Source: Auanema rhodensis
Lineage: Eukaryota; Animalia; Nematoda
DNA: 64,000 nucleotides
Direction of reading: 5' to 3'
NCBI GenBank assembly: GCA_964057225.1
Contig: OZ059894.1
Location: 9,982,001-10,046,000 of the forward strand
Shown here: piece after piece, positions 20,547 through 58,819 of the stretch
Layout of the letters: each line of letters begins with the position of its first letter
Position numbering within the stretch: the first letter of the stretch is position 1
Position numbers and translations under genes: made by a program
The notes under the pieces: generated by a model
The model's database searches: none
What the model saw: the letters and a program-made list of their open reading frames with translations, nothing else
What the model was told of the DNA's origin: nothing

Positions 20547-22046
20547 ATGTCCTTGGAATTTCGGGTAGGAACTAAGAGTGATAATGATATTGTTCATCAA
20601 TTCTTGTTGGATCATTTCCGGGTAACAGAACCAATTACATCATCTTTACGTTCGTATTATATCTTATATAGCTTCGTTAACTTACTAGTAGTACCCAGCA
20701 TGGTCTCAATCTGTCTTCTCTATTCAGTATGACCTGGAGACTATTGACAAATAGCATACTCTCATTGTGAGTGTGCACCCATACCAGATACGGCGCAAGA
20801 ATTAGCCGCAATGCAGGCGCGAGTTAGATTCTTTAGCTTTGCGCAGTGGCGATAACGTGATCAATGAGGCTTTGCCGAGATGCGTTTATTGCTGGTTGAA
20901 AACTTTTCCCAATTACCCGCGATATCTCCTGAAACACGGATGGTATACGCAATTTTTGAACGCCCACCCGGGCAGAAAGTCCATATAAAGAACACTTGAG
21001 TGTTGTTCAGTGCTTTTTATTCAAAGTTATGTTTGAATGAAATAAACTCCTCAGTTCCCCTCGCAGAGTGGAAGAATATATATTTTAAGAATCACATGCC
21101 ATATTTTATTTTTTCCTTTTTTTTTAAATTAACCATGCAAATAGTGTAAAAATAATTCAAAACTTCCTGACATTTCCTCACAATAATAAACGAAAAATTA
21201 TTTAAATTAAAAATTGAATTTTTGCGAGAGAAATATAATTTAATAACTCTTCAGCTTCTTCGAAGGAAGATGTTTTCAATTTTTTCATTGATTTGAGAGA
21301 TGGAGGACTACAAAATGAAACTTGTTCAACACTGGTTTTTGATGGAGCAGGTATTAGAAAAGTCTAAAGTTGATACAAAATCTTGTATTATTTTTGAAGA
21401 ATTAGTTGGCGTTAGTTTGAATTACACGAAAGACTTAGAAGGTATGCCGGATTCTGAAGTTCCTAAATTCGATCCCCATGAAGATTTTGCACAAGGTACA
21501 TCATCAATATCTTGTTTCGAAAAAAAAATATCGTCTTAGCAATTAAATCTGGTCCATACGAACAGCACAATGCCAACCGTCTTGTTGTTTTTGTTGAAAC
21601 TGTAGAAGCTGGTTTACCAAATCTTATTAAAGCTCCAAAGAAAATTTTCAAGATAGATGTGCTTTGTGTTCGCCAGGATTATCAAGGGTAAACGTTTCCT
21701 CATACGGTAGTTTGAAGTAAATCTCACATTTTTCAAGAAAGGGCATAGCATCAAAACTGCTAAAAAGAGCTGAGGCTTCAGCTGCCGAAGCCAAATGCGA
21801 TTTTATAATTTCCGCAGCAACAGCAGTAGCTTCCCAAACTCTATTCGCTAAGGTATAATAGTGATTCACTCTCAAAAATATATTTTTGTTATTCAGAATG
21901 GATTCAAAACAATTCGTGAGCTGCCTTTCTCGTGTTTCCGCGAAAATGGAGAAGCAGTTTATCAGAATTTACCCGATAAGGGTAGATCGGGAAAACTGAT
22001 GGCTAAAGTGGTACAACCACAAGAGGAGGAAGATGATCTGAAATAG
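20547..22046 (+). CDS. GNAT-family N-acetyltransferase, insect AANAT-like (anat-1-like)
   Basis: [89 protein letters not shown]; 605-nt first intron at 20650-21254. Confidence 0.8.
20770..20830 (+). promoter_or_regulatory. Putative snRNA proximal sequence element (PSE) region of the U4 gene
   Basis: GC-enriched block at about -65 to -10 relative to the U4 start, where nematode snRNA PSEs sit. The exact motif was not verified. Confidence 0.4.
20835..20977 (+). ncRNA. U4: U4 spliceosomal snRNA
   Basis: AGCTTTGCGCAGTGGCGATAACGTGATCAATGAGGCTTTGCCGAGATGCGTTTATTGCTGGTTGAAAACTTTTCCCAATT is the U4 5' region (U6-pairing stems, kink-turn loop). Sm site AATTTTTGA at 20951-20959, followed by a GCCC-ACCC-GGGC terminal hairpin. 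Confidence 0.95.
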
Positions 22047-42206: not shown

Positions 42207-46340
<4,134 letters not shown>

Positions 46341-48787
46341 ACTAAAACTAAGCATCATTTCCTATTGAGGGTTTTTAATGTAATTCTCTGTGCATCTTTC
46401 AAACTAATTTTTTGCGTTTTGTTACAAAAAACAATTTCTTTTTATACTCACACCTCAATTAAACTTCAAGTTATTATTTATGTCCTGATACTTCCTGATA
46501 GAATTTATCTAGTCTTATTTATATTTTATATTGCTACCGTTTTATAGGATGACTTTGCTTTCTCTTGTGTAAATAATTAGTGATGTTGCGATAGTGAGAA
46601 TTACATTTCGCTCACATAAATTGTACTCGCGAATAGTAGTAATAAAATAATAATTTACTTTTTTCTTCTGTTAGTTTTAATAATTTTTCTTATCACTCGG
46701 TCGTTCATTATTTCCACTTCATATTGAAGGAAGCTATTCTTTCGTATTTCATTGTGATTCCCGAAAAGTGGTCTCTGATGACTACGAATCCTTTAGTCTA
46801 TTCAGTTTAATAGATATACACACATTGATTGAAATGCTAAAGAATTTTTCAAACTTTCAAATTCTTAGTGTCAATTTATATTTAGAACAGGATGTGTCGC
46901 AATCATCAGCTATTTTCGTTTGTTGTACAAGCAATGCATACAACCACTTGTATATGTTGCTGTTTATACATCATACACAGTTAGAAGTTGATTTTCTCTT
47001 TTTTAGATTTATATCATTTTATTAATTGTGTGCTATGTTTATTTAATCCATGTACGCTAATACATGTGTCGCTATTTTATACTTGTTGTTTCCCAGCACT
47101 TTTGAATCTTCAGATTAAAAGTTCCCATTGAACTTCCAAATTTCAAAAAAGTAGTAGTATGATCGCTGAGCCTAGTTACAATTCACGGAAACTAGTTGTA
47201 CTCAAGTTGACTGTTCTGGTTTCATTATGAGAAACAAGATATGAATGACAGCCTGTTTATAAATTCCAAGCTGTGCCAGCCGATCGCTGTCTTCCTAAAA
47301 CAAGCTTTAAGGCGAATGCTCCTTTGCGGGAAGTCACAGGATAGCTTTATATTTGCAGAGTTGAGCCCGTTTTCCTTTTAAAAAAAAGGCCAATGTTCGG
47401 ACATATCACACATAATAATTCGTTTCCGGCAGTTTCTTGATTATTTCGTAGTTGGACTGATATGACTATTGATTGACACTTTCTCGTTCAGGTTTCCGAA
47501 AGGCAATAAACGATATTTCAAAAATTGCTGAAGGTAGTGATATCACAGCCACGTCTGTCTTCTATTTTATCAAATTTTCTATAATATAGTCGCATGATTC
47601 TCTCAAATTGTTACGAAATGAAATTTGATGATTTCCATATAATTTTCCATATTTGTATTAGTTTTTTCACCTTTCACTTCGACAGTAGCGAACTCTATTG
47701 CGTGTAATTTTCCAGTGAAATACCAACTTGATTGTGAGAGACGAAGAGATGGTGAGAAACAGAGAATCAGGTTGTATAGAAAACCCTATGAAATAGCTTG
47801 CTAGATTGCAGATCAGAGCGGCAGTGGCAAGACACTGATCTATTGTTAGAGAGTGCAGAGAAATAAAGCCCCGCGAGAGAGTGTTGGCCCAGTGGGGAGA
47901 TATTGGCGGGAGACACCATTCGATGGATGGAGTGTGCAGGGCCAGGCGGTCCTGCAAGGCCCATTCTCTATGGAAACCCTCAACTGCACAGTTAAAGTCT
48001 TCATTTTCTTTATCGCTTTCGATCAGAAACTAGCAACCTTCTGATAATATTGGACATTATTTTTTTAGTTTATAATGATTGACCCGTATTTATGCCCATT
48101 GCTGTTTAGCCCCATTTAAGAAAGCGTTACAATTTAAAATTGTATGTGGCTGTTCCAATCTTTCCTTTTTATTTATTTTAGATTATTAATGCCTGTGTTT
48201 AAGTCTATTGTTTTGAGACGAAGGGTATCAAAATTAATAAATACAAATGTATAGTACTGTTCTGTTGTTAGACTTAACAGATAGCTATTTCATTTTTTGT
48301 GTTTTTGTAGAAATGCAAGCTGATTGTGTAGTTTTAAAACACTTTGATCTTAATTTCTTCTTTATTCTAAGACATCTATGCTTATACATCATTCGACGAG
48401 TTTTTAAGGATATGACGTCATTTGTGTGCAGTGTTGAGTCATGTGCCTAGAGGGGAGGGGTGCCTGCAAAACTTAAGTATGAATTTTGTCTGCCTGCCCT
48501 CATTTCTTTTTTTCCAAAGAAAACATTTTAACAACGCTTTGAAAATACTAGATATTTCTTCCCTATTGAGAACAGACATTCTATGCTATTTAGTTTTGCG
48601 TTTACCGCAGCATTCTATTTATTGATTGGGGCCGTTTTGGGACAATTGTTAGTTCATAATTGCCTTTTTAATTACGTATCTCGGATTTTGTATCGTGTTT
48701 ATGTTTCACAAGTGAACTGTTTTTATTTGAAGGAAAATCCTTGAAACTTGGCTTAAACGAACAAATCACTGGGACAGCCAGTTGTGC

Positions 48788-49199
48788 ATGTTTTTGTGCC
48801 CAACGAAACACCACCGATATTTAGATTTTATGATCGACAACCCTCAAGAAGGTAAGCAAATTTAAGATAAAAAATGAAAATCGTTAATCGATTGATACGT
48901 CATTTCGCATTTGCTATTAAGCGTAAGCGGTTGCATGCAAATATTTGAAACAACTGAAAGTATATTCCAATTAAGAAGTAAGAAGTGAAGATTAATATTT
49001 AAATTTTAGGGAGGTTGTCCAGAAAAAGAAAGAAACTGAAGATCGTTAGATCTACAGCGTCCACAGACGCAGATTCCCATACGTCCCTCGTATGCTATTT
49101 GCACCAAACCCAGCAATTATCATCTGAAAACGAAGTTTTTAGTAGCAGCAGGCAAGAAAGCTAAACTTATGAAAGTGTTCATTGACATGATTTAGATAA
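48788..49199 (+). promoter_or_regulatory. Spliced upstream ORF in the eIF5 5' leader (copy 1) with poor-context AUGs
   Basis: In-frame TGC-ATG-T (48788) and TTT-ATG-A (48830); intron 48852-49009; the ORF stops at 49162-49164 if 49152-49195 is retained, or at 49197-49199 if it is spliced as GC-AG. Confidence 0.7.
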
Positions 49200-49211
49200 T
49201 AATCCGTAAAA

Positions 49212-50816
49212 ATGGCTCTTAATGTCAACCGTTCGGTCACTGACCCCTTCTACCGTTACAAAATGCCTAAATTGCAGGCTAAGGTAAGATTTCTGTAGCT
49301 CGTAAGTTTATATCATGTTTTCCTGTAGGTTGAAGGAAAAGGAAACGGAATCAAAACTGTTATTGCCAATATGACTGAGATAGCCAAATCTCTTGAACGT
49401 CCTCCAATGTGTACGCGACCAGAATTTTGAACTGAATAATTGATAATCAACATTACAGATCCTACCAAGTACTTTGGTTGTGAATTAGGAGCTCAGACCA
49501 ATTTTGATGCTAAAAATGAAAGATACATCGTTAATGGTGAACATGATGCACACAAGTTGCAAGATATCCTTGATGGTTTTATCAAAAAGTTTGTTCTCTG
49601 CCCATCATGTGATAACCCTGAAACCGCATTGGTAAATCATTTCCATATTTCGAAAACCTCTAGGGTTCCTGTTTTAGTCTGTTCGCCGCAACTTGATTAA
49701 CAGCAAATGTAAAGCTTGTGGTCACAACTTCACCATTGATAACAAGCACAAGTTGCACACATACATCATTCGCAATCCTCCTAAGGTTGAGATTGATTTC
49801 TGTAAGTTTGTTTAACTCTCAAAGCCAACTTGAATAATCAAATACGTTTTAAGCCAAAGCTAAGGAGAATGGCTGCACTAAGGAGAAGGAAAATAGCGAA
49901 GGAAATGATGACAGAGTAAGACTATTAATGGCTGATGAAGGATGTAACTAATTTCTTTTATAGAGTTCTAATGATGATGATGAGGATGATGAGGATTGGT
50001 CTCCTGAACCTGTTGAAGAAGTAACCAAGCTTTCCGCTGGTATTGGAAAGCTGGTCATTGACAAAGATTTGGATAAAAGTTTGGAGGAACGCCTTGACAT
50101 GCTACATCAATTTGTCATCCAGAAGAAAGAAGAAAATGATATTGGGGATGGAAAGGTAACCTAATATCGGATTCTATAGTAATTTCGCATTTAAGATTCT
50201 GGCTGATGAAGCTGAGCGATTGGAATTGAAACAAAAGGCAGGTACTGTGATGGTTCATGGGCTCTTAGACGAAAATATCTTGACCGAGAAGCAATTGGAG
50301 AAATATCGCAATCCATTCTTGAGAATCACACTCAATGATAAGAAGGTACGAAACATATTTTAATATTCTAGTAATCCAGTTCTTGTTTCAGGCTCAAAGA
50401 TACTTCCTTGGAGGTATTGAGCAACTTATCATCAAGCACGAGAATGATTTGTTCCCAAGAACTGCCCACATCATTAAGGCTATATATGATAACGATATTG
50501 TCGACGAAGAAGTTTTGATCGCTTGGGGTGAAAAGCCGTCATCCAAGTATGTGTCTAAGAAAGATGCCAAAAGGATTATTGATAAATCGGAAAAAGTCTT
50601 GACTTGGCTTAAAGAAGCTTCGGAAGAAGAAGAGTCGGACGAAGAGGATGAAGAAAATGTTGTTGTAAGTCCATATTTTCGTGCCTCTTTTTCAAATTCA
50701 CTTTTCAGTTCGATGATCGTCAGCCACATAGAGCAACTGTCATTCAACCTAAGATTGCTGAAACAATCATTGTTGAAGATGGAGACGGCACTGAAGTTAA
50801 CATTGATGATATTTGA
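49212..50816 (+). CDS. EIF5: Eukaryotic translation initiation factor 5 (copy 1)
   Basis: [72 protein letters not shown]2 domain ([25 protein letters not shown]), ends VNIDDI*. Confidence 0.97.
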
Positions 50817-51159
50817 ATTTTTTTAAACATTATTATAATCACAAACTTACTGAATCCTATGTTGAGGCCTCCATGTGAGCCCTTGTTTCTAACTTTGAAC
50901 TATAATCGCCATCTAATAGAGCATTGATTCTTACTGGAATCTAGCTAATTTGAAGTTATTCTGAGCGGCTATAGTGTTTTTATAAAACTACAATTTGTTG
51001 TCCTCCTCTATAGTTTTTCTTGAAGTGTTCTCTTTTGTATCGTATTTGAATCTTTTTAAGTAAATCATTATTTTCAGTTGCTTATATCGTTGTTTGGGTT
51101 TTTACTATGACAGAATATTTTATAATATGATAAAACAACATTATATAGTTGTTTTAGCT

Positions 51160-53039
51160 ATGGGAACCAGAAGAATATCAACTAGGCATGGGGATTTCAC
51201 ATTGTTTTTTACTAGACAGAGTCCATTTTCAAATTTTTATCCAGTTCGCTTTGATGTCGAGTATTTTTCTGATTACAAGGGCGGACACTTTTCCAGCGTA
51301 GAACAGTATTACATGCAAGTTTTCATAATTAATTTAAATCTGAATATATTGATCCATGTTTTTAAGGTATAATAAGGCTTTGTCATTTGGATGTACAGAG
51401 GAAGCAGAAAATATTTTGAAAGAAAAAGATCCCAGACAAGCTAAAATCATAGGAGCCAGCTTACCTTACTTCGATAAAGAAAAGTGAGACCTTCAAGGTA
51501 AAAACACATAACACACAGTGTTATGTAGATGGGACAAACTGAGTGCAAAGATAATGAAGAATGGCTTAAAAGCCAAATTCTCTCAAAACGATGATTTATT
51601 GTATCTTCTGTTTCTTACAAAAGGTTCGCAACTTGTAGAGTGTTCACCCACTGATAACGTATGGGGCATAGGTATGCGTTCATATTGAATTATTTGGAAA
51701 CAATTCATTGTTAAAGGTATGTCCATCGATGATCCAGACGCTGGAAATCCGAATCGCTGGAAAGGAACGAACAGATTAGGAGTTTTGATGAGTGAGATTA
51801 GAGATAGTCTGTGGGATGAGGAACGACATAGGTAATGGTCACACAATAATATTCTTACTTGAAAAACAGAAGAATTCGGGAAAAGGCAGAAATTAAAATA
51901 TATCAAAGTCATGACTTGGCTGAAGCATTCCATTTGAATGTTTTGAATTTAACTCGGTGTGTTATACCTGGATTTTGGGTTTGAATGTTGATTTTGAGGC
52001 GAAACGAAAAATATTACCGAAGTTTAAGAAAATACGACGACTCCAGCCATAGAAGCAGTAGTATAAAGGTTATCCCTATGTTATTCAGCTTCGTATTTAA
52101 GTTCTCGGTAAAATGAGGTGGCGATCTCGACATGATAGCAAATCGAAATCTCCGAAAAGGACCCGATGTATTTTGTGGGATTGATGTCAGATTGCTTAAT
52201 ATATAGTATTTCAGTTTCAAGCCCTTATGGTTCAATTCAAAGCCCCCCTAGGAATAGTCGCTGGCCTATCAGAGACCGCCAGCACGGAAGGAAAAGGCAT
52301 AGATCAGGTTTATTATATATCCTATTCTTAGCCGTTGCCTGTATTTCAGCCAAGTTTTTCGATTTCAGATTCCCCATCGCCATCCTACAGAGACAGAAAA
52401 TCTGAACATAAACGTGTTTCGAGAAATCATGATGTTTTTCAACCAGTAAAGAATATGCTCAGTTTCCAACATCCCGATCTTCTTTTCTTAGGATGGCTCA
52501 CACGAAAAAGAAAACACAGTTACGAATTCAAATGTTCAGAAGGATGCTGGCGATCTGGATATCAAGCAATCCTCAAAGACTCCGGCTGGAAACAAGGTTT
52601 GTGGAATTATCTAAGCACTGTTTTAAAGGGTTTCATCAGAACAAAAGAGAACCTATCGTATGGGATATAAACAGCAATTCTAACGATAATATTAAAGTTG
52701 TGGAAATCTTCAGTTTGAAAAGACAACATAACACATCATTTTCTGTTTGTTCTGGGAAGATTAATAAGAAAAAGGTCATCAGAAATGATCAGATTTTCAT
52801 CGAAAAGTTGGCCTAGAGATTTCGATTGGATCTCTTATATTAACTACTCTCATTTTAGCAAAAAGAAAGCTGATAATGAACCAAAGATTCTTGCGTTATC
52901 AACGATAAATGATAAGACAGCCCCAGTGGGTTTTACAAATTTTGTGAGGTAACTCAAGCTCAAACTTCAGATTGATAACTTATTGAACCGCATGAGGACA
53001 TTGGTTTGGGGAAAAAGAACTTCGAAAATTACCAAATGA
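51160..53039 (+). CDS. NADAR/YbiA-family protein with a C-terminal Arg/Ser-rich tail (copy 1)
   Basis: [72 protein letters not shown] are NADAR motifs. Downstream exons encode [15 protein letters not shown] and [11 protein letters not shown]; the tail exon boundaries are less certain. Confidence 0.85.
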
Positions 53040-54076
53040 CAGAAATAGAATATTTATATGATCTCAGCTTATAGATCTTCATACCTCATATTCTCAGATG
53101 TTTAATAGATTTTATCCTCCCTGTCTCAATCACAAACTGTATCTCTTTTTTTTTAATTCATGAGAACTTGAAATTATCATTTTCCTGCAGGAATATTTCA
53201 AAAATAGGCTCAAACATTCATGAACAGCCGATTTTTCAATCTTGAAGAGAAAAATTATGCGCTATTTTTATGCTAATTTGACGTGGCACAGAATGAAAAC
53301 TGATTCATTGTAGCTTCAATTATATTTTTTTGAATTTCGACTATTAATTATTTTAATGATTGAGAAAATAATAAAGATATTTTTGACCTACTTCTTGTTT
53401 ACAAGAAAAAATAAGATAAAGGTAAGATCAACTAAAATAAATTGCGTTTGATAGGTTAAAGCATCAAACTACGAAAAGGGTCGTAAATTTAATATTCACA
53501 TTGGTTTGCTAAAGTTCATTAATTTATATTTGAATGCACAATCCTGTACAGAATGATTTATAAATGACATTTTTAAATACTGAATGACAAATAAAGCTTT
53601 TTTTCTCAAGTATAATGGCTAATGGCAGTGTATAAATCTAAATACATATTCAGCTATTTTTGTTTCGAAAAAAAATTATTCTAGAAAATTCAATAAAAGA
53701 GACTTTTAATATTAAATACTAAATAATACTCTCTAACTCCATAACACGAGTTCATGCGATCCATTCTTTGTTTCATTGGAGCAGCGAAGAGATACGCTTG
53801 TGTATTTTAGTTAAAGGGCGGTAACTGAATACCGTTTCTATGTTGAACGAGATTTTCAGTTTTCACTAAAAATTAACATTGTGGGTATTTAGTGTCGTCT
53901 TTTCAAATCTTTTATTGATTGGAATTATTTTAGGACAATCATTTTATATTATTTCTATTTCGTTTTCTTTTTCTATTGTTTCATCATTAAGTTTTCACAA
54001 GTGAACTGTTTTTATTTGAAGGAAAATCCTTGAAACTTGGCTTAAACGAACAAATCACTGGGACAGCCAGTTGTGC

Positions 54077-54488
54077 ATGTTTTTGTGCCCAACGAAACAC
54101 CACCGATATTTAGATTTTATGATCGACAACCCTCAAGAAGGTAAGCAAATTTAAGATAAAAAATGAAAATCGTTAATCGATTGATACGTCATTTCGCATT
54201 TGCTATTAAGCGTAAGCGGTTGCATGCAAATATTTGAAACAACTGAAAGTATATTCCAATTAAGAAGTAAGAAGTGAAGATTAATATTTAAATTTTAGGG
54301 AGGTTGTCCAGAAAAAGAAAGAAACTGAAGATCGTTAGATCTACAGCGTCCACAGACGCAGATTCCCATACGTCCCTCGTATGCTATTTGCACCAAACCC
54401 AGCAATTATCATCTGAAAACGAAGTTTTTAGTAGCAGCAGGCAAGAAAGCTAAACTTATGAAAGTGTTCATTGACATGATTTAGATAA
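54077..54488 (+). promoter_or_regulatory. eIF5 upstream ORF (copy 2)
   Basis: Same sequence as 48788-49199, shifted by 5289. Confidence 0.7.
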
Positions 54489-54500
54489 TAATCCGTAAAA

Positions 54501-56105
54501 ATGGCTCTTAATGTCAACCGTTCGGTCACTGACCCCTTCTACCGTTACAAAATGCCTAAATTGCAGGCTAAGGTAAGATTTCTGTAGCTCGTAAGTTTAT
54601 ATCATGTTTTCCTGTAGGTTGAAGGAAAAGGAAACGGAATCAAAACTGTTATTGCCAATATGACTGAGATAGCCAAATCTCTTGAACGTCCTCCAATGTG
54701 TACGCGACCAGAATTTTGAACTGAATAATTGACAATCAACATTACAGATCCTACCAAGTACTTTGGTTGTGAATTAGGAGCTCAGACCAATTTTGATGCT
54801 AAAAATGAAAGATACATCGTTAATGGTGAACATGATGCACACAAGTTGCAAGATATCCTTGATGGTTTTATCAAAAAGTTTGTTCTCTGCCCATCATGTG
54901 ATAACCCTGAAACCGCATTGGTAAATCATTTCCATATTTCGAAAACCTCTAGGGTTCCTGTTTTAGTCTGTTCGCCGCAACTTGATTAACAGCAAATGTA
55001 AAGCTTGTGGTCACAACTTCACCATTGATAACAAGCACAAGTTGCACACATACATCATTCGCAATCCTCCTAAGGTTGAGATTGATTTCTGTAAGTTTGT
55101 TTAACTCTCAAAGCCAACTTGAATAATCAAATACGTTTTAAGCCAAAGCTAAGGAGAATGGCTGCACTAAGGAGAAGGAAAATAGCGAAGGAAATGATGA
55201 CAGAGTAAGACTATTAATGGCTGATGAAGGATGTAACTAATTTCTTTTATAGAGTTCTAATGATGATGATGAGGATGATGAGGATTGGTCTCCTGAACCT
55301 GTTGAAGAAGTAACCAAGCTTTCCGCTGGTATTGGAAAGCTGGTCATTGACAAAGATTTGGATAAAAGTTTGGAGGAACGCCTTGACATGCTACATCAAT
55401 TTGTCATCCAGAAGAAAGAAGAAAATGATATTGGGGATGGAAAGGTAACCTAATATCGGATTCTATAGTAATTTCGCATTTAAGATTCTGGCTGATGAAG
55501 CTGAGCGATTGGAATTGAAACAAAAGGCAGGTACTGTGATGGTTCATGGGCTCTTAGACGAAAATATCTTGACCGAGAAGCAATTGGAGAAATATCGCAA
55601 TCCATTCTTGAGAATCACACTCAATGATAAGAAGGTACGAAACATATTTTAATATTCTAGTAATCCAGTTCTTGTTTCAGGCTCAAAGATACTTCCTTGG
55701 AGGTATTGAGCAACTTATCATCAAGCACGAGAATGATTTGTTCCCAAGAACTGCCCACATCATTAAGGCTATATATGATAACGATATTGTCGACGAAGAA
55801 GTTTTGATCGCTTGGGGTGAAAAGCCGTCATCCAAGTATGTGTCTAAGAAAGATGCCAAAAGGATTATTGATAAATCGGAAAAAGTCTTGACTTGGCTTA
55901 AAGAAGCTTCGGAAGAAGAAGAGTCGGACGAAGAGGATGAAGAAAATGTTGTTGTAAGTCCATATTTTCGTGCCTCTTTTTCAAATTCACTTTTCAGTTC
56001 GATGATCGTCAGCCACATAGAGCAACTGTCATTCAACCTAAGATTGCTGAAACAATCATTGTTGAAGATGGAGACGGCACTGAAGTTAACATTGATGATA
56101 TTTGA
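54501..56105 (+). CDS. EIF5: Eukaryotic translation initiation factor 5 (copy 2)
   Basis: Coding sequence appears identical to copy 1. Confidence 0.95.
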
Positions 56106-56448
56106 ATTTTTTTAAACATTATTATAATCACAAACTTACTGAATCCTATGTTGAGGCCTCCATGTGAGCCCTTGTTTCTAACTTTGAACTATAATCGCCA
56201 TCTAATAGAGCATTGATTCTTACTGGAATCTAGCTAATTTGAAGTTATTCTGAGCGGCTATAGTGTTTTTATAAAACTACAATTTGTTGTCCTCCTCTAT
56301 AGTTTTTCTTGAAGTGTTCTCTTTTGTATCGTATTTGAATCTTTTTAAGTAAATCATTATTTTCAGTTGCTTATATCGTTGTTTGGGTTTTTACTATGAC
56401 AGAATATTTTATAATATGATAAAACAACATTATATAGTTGTTTTAGCT

Positions 56449-58328
56449 ATGGGAACCAGAAGAATATCAACTAGGCATGGGGATTTCACATTGTTTTTTA
56501 CTAGACAGAGTCCATTTTCAAATTTTTATCCAGTTCGCTTTGATGTCGAGTATTTTTCTGATTACAAGGGCGGACACTTTTCCAGCGTAGAACAGTATTA
56601 CATGCAAGTTTTCATAATTAATTTAAATCTGAATATATTGATCCATGTTTTTAAGGTATAATAAGGCTTTGTCATTTGGATGTACAGAGGAAGCAGAAAA
56701 TATTTTGAAAGAAAAAGATCCCAGACAAGCTAAAATCATAGGAGCCAGCTTACCTTACTTCGATAAAGAAAAGTGAGACCTTCAAGGTAAAAACACATAA
56801 CACACAGTGTTATGTAGATGGGACAAACTGAGTGCAAAGATAATGAAGAATGGCTTAAAAGCCAAATTCTCTCAAAACGATGATTTATTGTATCTTCTGT
56901 TTCTTACAAAAGGTTCGCAACTTGTAGAGTGTTCACCCACTGATAACGTATGGGGCATAGGTATGCGTTCATATTGAATTATTTGGAAACAATTCATTGT
57001 TAAAGGTATGTCCATCGATGATCCAGACGCTGGAAATCCGAATCGCTGGAAAGGAACGAACAGATTAGGAGTTTTGATGAGTGAGATTAGAGATAGTCTG
57101 TGGGATGAGGAACGACATAGGTAATGGTCACACAATAATATTCTTACTTGAAAAACAGAAGAATTCGGGAAAAGGCAGAAATTAAAATATATCAAAGTCA
57201 TGACTTGGCTGAAGCATTCCATTTGAATGTTTTGAATTTAACTCGGTGTGTTATACCTGGATTTTGGGTTTGAATGTTGATTTTGAGGCGAAACGAAAAA
57301 TATTACCGAAGTTTAAGAAAATACGACGACTCCAGCCATAGAAGCAGTAGTATAAAGGTTATCCCTATGTTATTCAGCTTCGTATTTAAGTTCTCGGTAA
57401 AATGAGGTGGCGATCTCGACATGATAGCAAATCGAAATCTCCGAAAAGGACCCGATGTATTTTGTGGGATTGATGTCAGATTGCTTAATATATAGTATTT
57501 CAGTTTCAAGCCCTTATGGTTCAATTCAAAGCCCCCCTAGGAATAGTCGCTGGCCTATCAGAGACCGCCAGCACGGAAGGAAAAGGCATAGATCAGGTTT
57601 ATTATATATCCTATTCTTAGCCGTTGCCTGTATTTCAGCCAAGTTTTTCGATTTCAGATTCCCCATCGCCATCCTACAGAGACAGAAAATCTGAACATAA
57701 ACGTGTTTCGAGAAATCATGATGTTTTTCAACCAGTAAAGAATATGCTCAGTTTCCAACATCCCGATCTTCTTTTCTTAGGATGGCTCACACGAAAAAGA
57801 AAACACAGTTACGAATTCAAATGTTCAGAAGGATGCTGGCGATCTGGATATCAAGCAATCCTCAAAGACTCCGGCTGGAAACAAGGTTTGTGGAATTATC
57901 TAAGCACTGTTTTAAAGGGTTTCATCAGAACAAAAGAGAACCTATCGTATGGGATATAAACAGCAATTCTAACGATAATATTAAAGTTGTGGAAATCTTC
58001 AGTTTGAAAAGACAACATAACACATCATTTTCTGTTTGTTCTGGGAAGATTAATAAGAAAAAGGTCATCAGAAATGATCAGATTTTCATCGAAAAGTTGG
58101 CCTAGAGATTTCGATTGGATCTCTTATATTAACTACTCTCATTTTAGCAAAAAGAAAGCTGATAATGAACCAAAGATTCTTGCGTTATCAACGATAAATG
58201 ATAAGACAGCCCCAGTGGGTTTTACAAATTTTGTGAGGTAACTCAAGCTCAAACTTCAGATTGATAACTTATTGAACCGCATGAGGACATTGGTTTGGGG
58301 AAAAAGAACTTCGAAAATTACCAAATGA
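56449..58328 (+). CDS. NADAR/YbiA-family protein with RS-rich tail (copy 2)
   Basis: Appears identical to 51160-53039. Confidence 0.85.
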
Positions 58329-58819
58329 CAGAAATAGAATATTTATATGATCTCAGCTTATAGATCTTCATACCTCATATTCTCAGATGTTTAATAGATT
58401 TTATCCTCCCTGTCTCAATCACAAACTGTATCTGCTTTGCATGAATTTTGAAGAAAACTCATTGAAATTCGAACAACCGATTTTTCAATTATTATGTATA
58501 AAAATGACGAGCTAGCGTATGCTAATTTTTCAAAAGTCATTGCTGTATTTTAACGTTTTGAATCAAATTAAATAAGTTTAAAAAATATATTATATTTTAT
58601 TTATGAAAAAAAGAAGAGATTTTTAATGTCTGAGACAAACCACCGAAAATGCTACCCTTAGAGTACATCTGAGTGCGAAATAAAGCACAAAATTTTCTAC
58701 AAGGAAACCAAAAGAAATTATGCTTCAAAACATGAAATCGGCGAAAAATATTGAATATAATTGATAGTTTTGAAAAGCTTGACCTACAATGTAGAAAATA
58801 TTAAATAAAACCAAACAAA

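Follow-up and report, generated by a model that had tools for sequence, protein, structure and literature searches.

The leader of the eIF5 messenger RNA (mRNA) was analyzed in a window of Auanema rhodensis DNA, the window being the whole stretch of 64,000 nucleotides (nt) taken from contig OZ059894.1 (assembly GCA_964057225.1, positions 9,982,001 to 10,046,000 of the forward strand), and all coordinates below are counted from its first letter. The gene at 49212-50816 on the plus strand is eIF5, and its mRNA carries upstream AUG codons (uAUGs) in weak context which open a conserved upstream open reading frame (uORF). We consider, with a probability of about 0.78, that this conserved leader works as a self-limiting sensor of start-codon stringency and that the second intron of the leader, which has GC-AG splice sites, is an ordinary intron. 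Judged by its sequence features, the leader carries the autoregulatory eIF5 uORF that was described by Loughran et al. in 2012, so the core of the system is already known, Nematoda included.

In that study (Loughran, Sachs, Atkins and Ivanov 2012, PMC3326321) poor-context uAUGs were present in nearly all of 337 eIF5 mRNAs, including the Nematoda set of its Figure 1B. The first of them (uAUG1) has U at position -3 in 98.8% of cases and never has G at +4, the longest uORF has at least 50 codons in invertebrates, the uORF peptide shows some phylum-specific conservation, and in human cells, the one setting in which a dosage response has been demonstrated, overexpression of eIF5 represses its own leader and eIF1 acts inversely. 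The leader in the window has the sequence marks of such an autoregulatory uORF, namely uAUGs that lie in the mature leader, the context of uAUG1, and a uORF of fitting length which ends close to the main AUG.

Transcript evidence and structure of the leader

The eIF5 identity of the gene is provided by two Pfam domains in one open reading frame (ORF), the N-terminal zinc-binding IF2B/IF5 domain (PF01873, eIF-5_eIF-2B; 1.2e-18) and the C-terminal W2 domain (PF02020; 5.5e-20). An earlier reading of the letters alone (hereafter the original prediction) had named both the gene and its known autoregulation by poor-context uAUGs, and these two statements are borne out by the domains and by PMC3326321. 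The coding region (49212-50816, plus strand) has nine coding exons and eight GT-AG introns of 40-52 nt, and the spliced ORF of 411 amino acids has no internal stop. Introns this short, acceptors of the TTTTAG type and the relatives described below agree with a nematode origin. The main AUG at 49212 stands in the strong context gtaaaaAUGg.

The RNA evidence consists of assembled contigs from four runs (X1-X4) of one 2019 study, which were aligned to 46400-52300 and are recognizable as RNA by being spliced. Transcript contigs drop rare variants, so minor isoforms may go unseen in them, and contig depths are rough measures. All eight coding-region introns are removed in these contigs with zero mismatches. 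The contigs of the four runs also give a spliced leader of 277 nt with two extra exons upstream of the main AUG. Leader exon 1 (48733-48851, plus strand) contains uAUG1 at 48788 and a second, in-frame uAUG (uAUG2) at 48830. It is followed by leader intron 1 (48852-49009, plus strand), a GT-AG intron of 158 nt lying in phase 1 within a conserved glycine codon of the uORF, with the donor AAG/GTAAGC at 48852 and the acceptor TTTTAG at 49009; the X3 and X4 contigs run straight through the joint 48851/49010, and those of X1 and X2 have loose ends that match it. Leader exon 2 (49010-49151, plus strand) starts with the basic block (G)RLSRKRKKLK and contains a third uAUG (uAUG3). Leader intron 2 (49152-49195, plus strand) is 44 nt long, has the donor CAG/GCAAGA at 49152 and the acceptor ATTTAG at 49195, and is spliced out in all four runs. 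Two letters of its joint (49151/49196, 4/4 runs) are ambiguous in the alignment, which gives it as 49149>49194; since the +2 register alone yields an AG acceptor, the intron is of the GC-AG type.

The 5′ ends of the contigs are at 48731 in X3 and X4 and at 48733 in X1 and X2, immediately 3′ of an acceptor-like tract, tttttatttgaAG (48720-48732, plus strand), which abuts the mature 5′ end and is a probable site of spliced leader (SL) trans-splicing. An acceptor-like site, TTTTCAG or TTTAG in the relatives described below, precedes uAUG1 by 55 nt in the window and likewise in the relatives L007 and L011, and by 42 nt in L006, which favors 48733 being an orthologous exon boundary. The SL is therefore most likely added at 48733, upstream of the uORF, which would hence be retained in the mature mRNA. 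By the rough measure that contig depth gives, the separate contig holding exon 1 in X1 and X2 has a depth equal to or above that of the coding contig. The uORF exons belong to the bulk of eIF5 mRNA, and a single leader isoform is visible in the contigs.

Two side observations belong to this 5′ end. In X1 and X2 one contig has the opening 12 nt of leader exon 2 rejoined to 48733 through a shared GAAAA (48733-48737 and 49022-49026); a chimera made by template switching at the 5′ end of the RNA is its likeliest origin, and splice signals that would point to a back-splice are absent. An Rfam scan of the window gave no SL RNA genes, its sole match being a U4 spliceosomal small nuclear RNA gene at 20835-20973 (RF00015, 114 bits).

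Upstream AUG codons and the first uORF

Three uAUGs are present in the spliced leader. The first, at 48788 (ttgtgcATGtt), has U at -3 and U at +4, and the second, at 48830 (gattttATGat), has U at -3 and A at +4 and lies in the same frame. The third, at 49092 (cctcgtATGct), was overlooked by the original prediction; lying in a different frame, it starts a nested uORF 11 codons long (49092-49127). Position -3 is thus a pyrimidine in all three, and position +4 is never G. The long uORF that begins at uAUG1 (uORF1; 48788-49202, plus strand) has 69 codons when spliced, or 55 when counted from uAUG2, and crosses both leader introns. It is closed by tandem stops, TAA at 49197-49199 and TAA at 49200-49202, 12 nt 5′ of the main AUG.

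Most of this architecture had been foreseen. The two in-frame uAUGs in poor context, together with a stop 12 nt before a main AUG of optimal context, can be read from the sequence as predicted; the uORF of about 69 codons running across intron 48852-49009 agrees with both the sequence and the joint 48851/49010, and the proposed 44-nt intron with the borders CAG/GCAAGA and TTTAG is the one which the contigs of all four runs lack.

Shuffling gave an ORF that ran on from uAUG1 for 69 codons or more in 1.6% of cases. Poor context at three uAUGs has by itself a chance of about 0.07 from base composition, which is a rough estimate and not significant in one species, so the decisive weight comes from conservation across relatives.

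The surroundings of uAUG1 have two further features. The hexamer UGCAUG that contains it (48785-48790, also found in L003, L006, L007 and L011) is the binding motif of RBFOX/ASD-1/FOX-1, and poor context alone does not account for the constant G at -2 and C at -1. Just 5′ of uAUG1 the letters ACTGG...CCAGT (48769-48784) could form a hairpin of 5 bp; the window shares them with L003 and L011, and L006 and L007 lack them.

Conservation in relatives

The relatives were found by a search with the eIF5 exon-3 ORF, and contigs encoding several matches were examined; vertebrate-looking matches were left out of the comparison. Five of the relative loci extend far enough upstream, namely L003, L006, L007, L011/L012 and L009/L010. 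The loci L004 and L005 (best-scoring protein match, E 5.8e-34) end short of the first coding exon and were left out of the leader comparison. L011/L012 is very AT-rich. L009/L010 comes from a soil metagenome and has 53% GC; its contig starts within intron 1, so exon 2 alone is comparable. The protein start of L003 resembles what we take to be the start of C. elegans eIF5. DNA pattern scans of metagenomes for further nematode leaders gave zero matches, and a literature search on C37C3.2 gave, among the papers listed and judging by title and abstract, none dealing with the leader.

The uAUG contexts, whose conservation in other nematodes the original prediction had singled out as a check, are kept in four relatives (L003, L006, L007 and L011): uAUG1 stands there in TTG(TG)C-ATG, with U at -3 and U or A at +4, and an in-frame uAUG2 with U at -3 follows 13-15 codons later. 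The same four loci share with the window the position of leader intron 1 and its phase 1 in a glycine codon. In five of five relatives, that is these four and L009, the next exon is opened by GRLSRKRKKLK, and the block is located 8-18 codons past uAUG2 in every relative. In a comparison of its codons over six taxa, variation is found in 10 of the 11 columns, with at least 14 synonymous changes against one conservative replacement (K>R). This 14:1 pattern of synonymous to replacement changes reads as the signature of a translated uORF peptide under constraint, and constraint at the level of the peptide would mean that the reading frame is fixed across the splice junction. The out-of-frame uAUG3 (GT-ATG-C) is kept in L003, L007 and L011, three of the four relatives readable there, and is absent from L006.

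The rest of uORF1 is poorly conserved, both in sequence and in length (41-84 codons). The conserved parts are the MFL start, the basic block and a VC.L patch, about 11-18 residues in total. Wherever the structure is clear, uORF1 ends next to the main AUG or over it, at a distance that also varies: in the window 12 nt separate the two, in L006, where the uORF has 41 codons, the gap is 6 nt, and in L003, where by the author's splice reading it has 84 codons, there is an overlap of 16 nt. Two eIF5 loci without a nematode-type leader, L013 (about 10 kb searched upstream of the eIF5 start; taken as insect) and L014 (about 6 kb), gave no GRLSRKRKKLK-like motif in these upstream regions, and from its absence there the uORF peptide looks nematode-specific.

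Set beside the system of PMC3326321, the leader of the window is alike in having uAUGs with U or another pyrimidine at -3 and no G at +4, in a first uAUG that opens the longest uORF (69 codons against the stated invertebrate minimum of 50), and in an end of uORF1 too near the main AUG for reinitiation at this codon, which is itself in strong context. It differs from that system in that two introns, of which one is GC-AG, interrupt it, and in that SL trans-splicing of the mRNA probably takes place 5′ of the uORF. It is also unlike vertebrate eIF5, as its uORF ends 12 nt short of the main AUG with no overlap, whereas that of the Caenorhabditis-like L003 does overlap. As in the conserved peptide uORFs (CPuORFs; Hayden and Jorgensen 2007, cited in PMC3326321), the amino acids of the uORF appear to be under purifying selection and its synonymous sites are drifting. 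Unlike CPuORFs, the window uORF is conserved only in the short basic block, the MFL start and the VC.L patch, and has no known ligand or stalling mechanism.

The GC-AG intron of the leader

A regulatory role had been proposed for leader intron 2, in which the weak GC donor would let the acceptor at 49195 be cis-spliced with the uORF kept, be retained, or be SL trans-spliced with the uORF deleted, and the choice among the three would tune the feedback. Parts of this proposal stand. Both the GC donor and its acceptor are borne out, and the predicted effect of retention holds in the sequence, as the stop would move to 49162-49164 and two AUGs would be added at 49169 and 49187. GC donors are enriched among alternatively spliced nematode genes, according to PMC2490688, and minor forms are possible given that contigs lose rare variants. 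As in the regulated nematode GC-AG introns of that source, the GC donor here sits in an otherwise strong consensus, CAG/GCAAGA.

The three-way switch itself is not what the data point to. A single leader isoform is found in the four runs; no contig retains intron 2, with the limit that rare forms may be hidden, and no contig of the four runs has foreign or loose 5′ letters at 49196. The depth of the exon-1 contig in X1 and X2, which by rough measure does not fall below that of the coding contig, is also a point against the switch. Of the junctions that the original prediction had named for mapping, both cis joints (49009 and 49195) are seen, and SL addition at 49195 is unsupported, just as no SL junction was seen at 48733. 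Moreover the GC donor is lineage-specific. The equivalent intron has GTAAGT in L003, it is a long intron with GTATGT in L007, and L006 has no intron at all between the block and the main AUG.

The GC donor is also not special in this region, since two of the 17 RNA-supported introns in 46400-52300 are GC-AG; the other one is intron 1 of the neighboring NADAR gene (51315-51366, AT/GCAAGT), 2 kb away, which is constitutively spliced in 4/4 runs. Introns of this type look frequent in the genome. Nematode trans-splicing normally acts on outrons, and an acceptor which, like that at 49195, has a donor in use 44 nt upstream of it is not a normal substrate. Retention would in any case change little, because the uORF stops before the main AUG with intron 2 either spliced or retained. 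Unlike the regulated introns of PMC2490688, leader intron 2 has no alternative product in view, no conserved donor, and a constitutive neighbor of the same kind. We therefore regard the switch as very unlikely, and the 44-nt GC-AG intron would be an ordinary, efficiently spliced intron with no switch role.

Possible roles of the uORF peptide

The constraint on the basic block admits another explanation, in which the polybasic GRLSRKRKKLK slows the ribosome while it is being made, and queued scanning subunits raise initiation at the weak uAUGs, or a stall leads to decay of the mRNA. The 14:1 selection at the peptide level speaks for it, as a model in which any long uORF suffices would not need such selection; so does the placing of the block 8-18 codons past uAUG2 in every relative, and the missing motif upstream of eIF5 in L013 and L014 matches the phylum-specific conservation noted in PMC3326321. 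However, the remainder of the uORF is poorly conserved over its 41-84 codons, and Loughran et al. argue that the role of the uORF is not strictly dependent on peptide sequence (PMC3326321). Stalling is putative here, and the explanation is compatible with a stringency sensor and does not exclude it. We rate it as unlikely, though the most probable among the alternatives to an ordinary sensor. If true, pausing at the intron-straddling block would be a peptide-dependent gain stage which amplifies the stringency signal or links it to decay of the mRNA, and such a stage is undescribed for eIF5.

It may also be supposed that the 69-residue product is functional itself and is located upstream of eIF5 only incidentally; the block is conserved, and its RKRKKLK resembles a nuclear localization signal. 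The conservation covers about 11-18 residues, though, with the C-terminal part free in both length and sequence, the start codons are kept weak, and in one relative (L003) the ORF overlaps the eIF5 start. An independent micropeptide is on these grounds the least probable of the explanations, below even the splicing switch.

Proposed mechanism and its weighing

In the mechanism that we favor, the eIF5 leader would act as a self-limiting sensor. Scanning ribosomes would meet three AUGs of weak context, uAUG1, uAUG2 and the nested uAUG3. Those starting on uORF1 would be unable to reach the eIF5 AUG or to reinitiate at it, and those leaking past all three uAUGs would initiate at the strong AAAAUGG. 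High eIF5 would make the choice of start codon less stringent, more ribosomes would then start on the uORF, and less eIF5 would be made.

Several points weigh against this mechanism. The feedback in the nematode leader is extrapolated from the work in human cells, from the design of the leader and from its conservation, and the splice structures of the relatives are the author's reading of genomic contigs alone. The RNA support is confined to one study, and its contigs can hide minor isoforms, so that it is weak as negative evidence; moreover, the RNA of the two eIF5 gene copies in the window (see below) cannot be told apart. At 48733 the contigs stop at the AG or enter a chimeric extension and no SL letters are seen in them, and a transcription start at this position, in place of SL addition, could also give such an end.

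Neighboring genes and the second copy

The eIF5 gene lies between an alpha-actinin-like gene upstream, which ends at 46340, and a NADAR-domain gene downstream with its ATG at 51160. The 3′ untranslated region of eIF5 occupies 50817-51044 on the plus strand, with the RNA contigs ending at 51019-51044. The contig of the NADAR gene starts at 51156 (AG plus exon, after ttttAG), which leaves a gap of about 115 nt from the end of eIF5; a gap of this size is operon-like and suggests SL2-type trans-splicing of the NADAR gene.

The block 48704-53144, comprising eIF5 and the NADAR gene, recurs at 53993-58433 with an offset of +5289, and the sole mismatch is at 49444, within an intron. The second copy of the leader is located at 54022-54500 (plus strand), inside the repeat. 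The identity of the two copies begins 29 nt before the mature 5′ end at 48733, and their flanks are unrelated. The duplication could be a recent segmental copy, a product of gene conversion or an assembly artefact.

Significance

As the RNA-processing switch is unsupported, no new regulatory principle is revealed by the leader. Its value is that of an RNA-supported nematode instance of the ancient eIF5/eIF1 feedback on start-codon stringency, in which organisms that trans-splice, and whose leaders are usually very short, keep a uORF-bearing leader of about 280 nt on their eIF5 mRNA.

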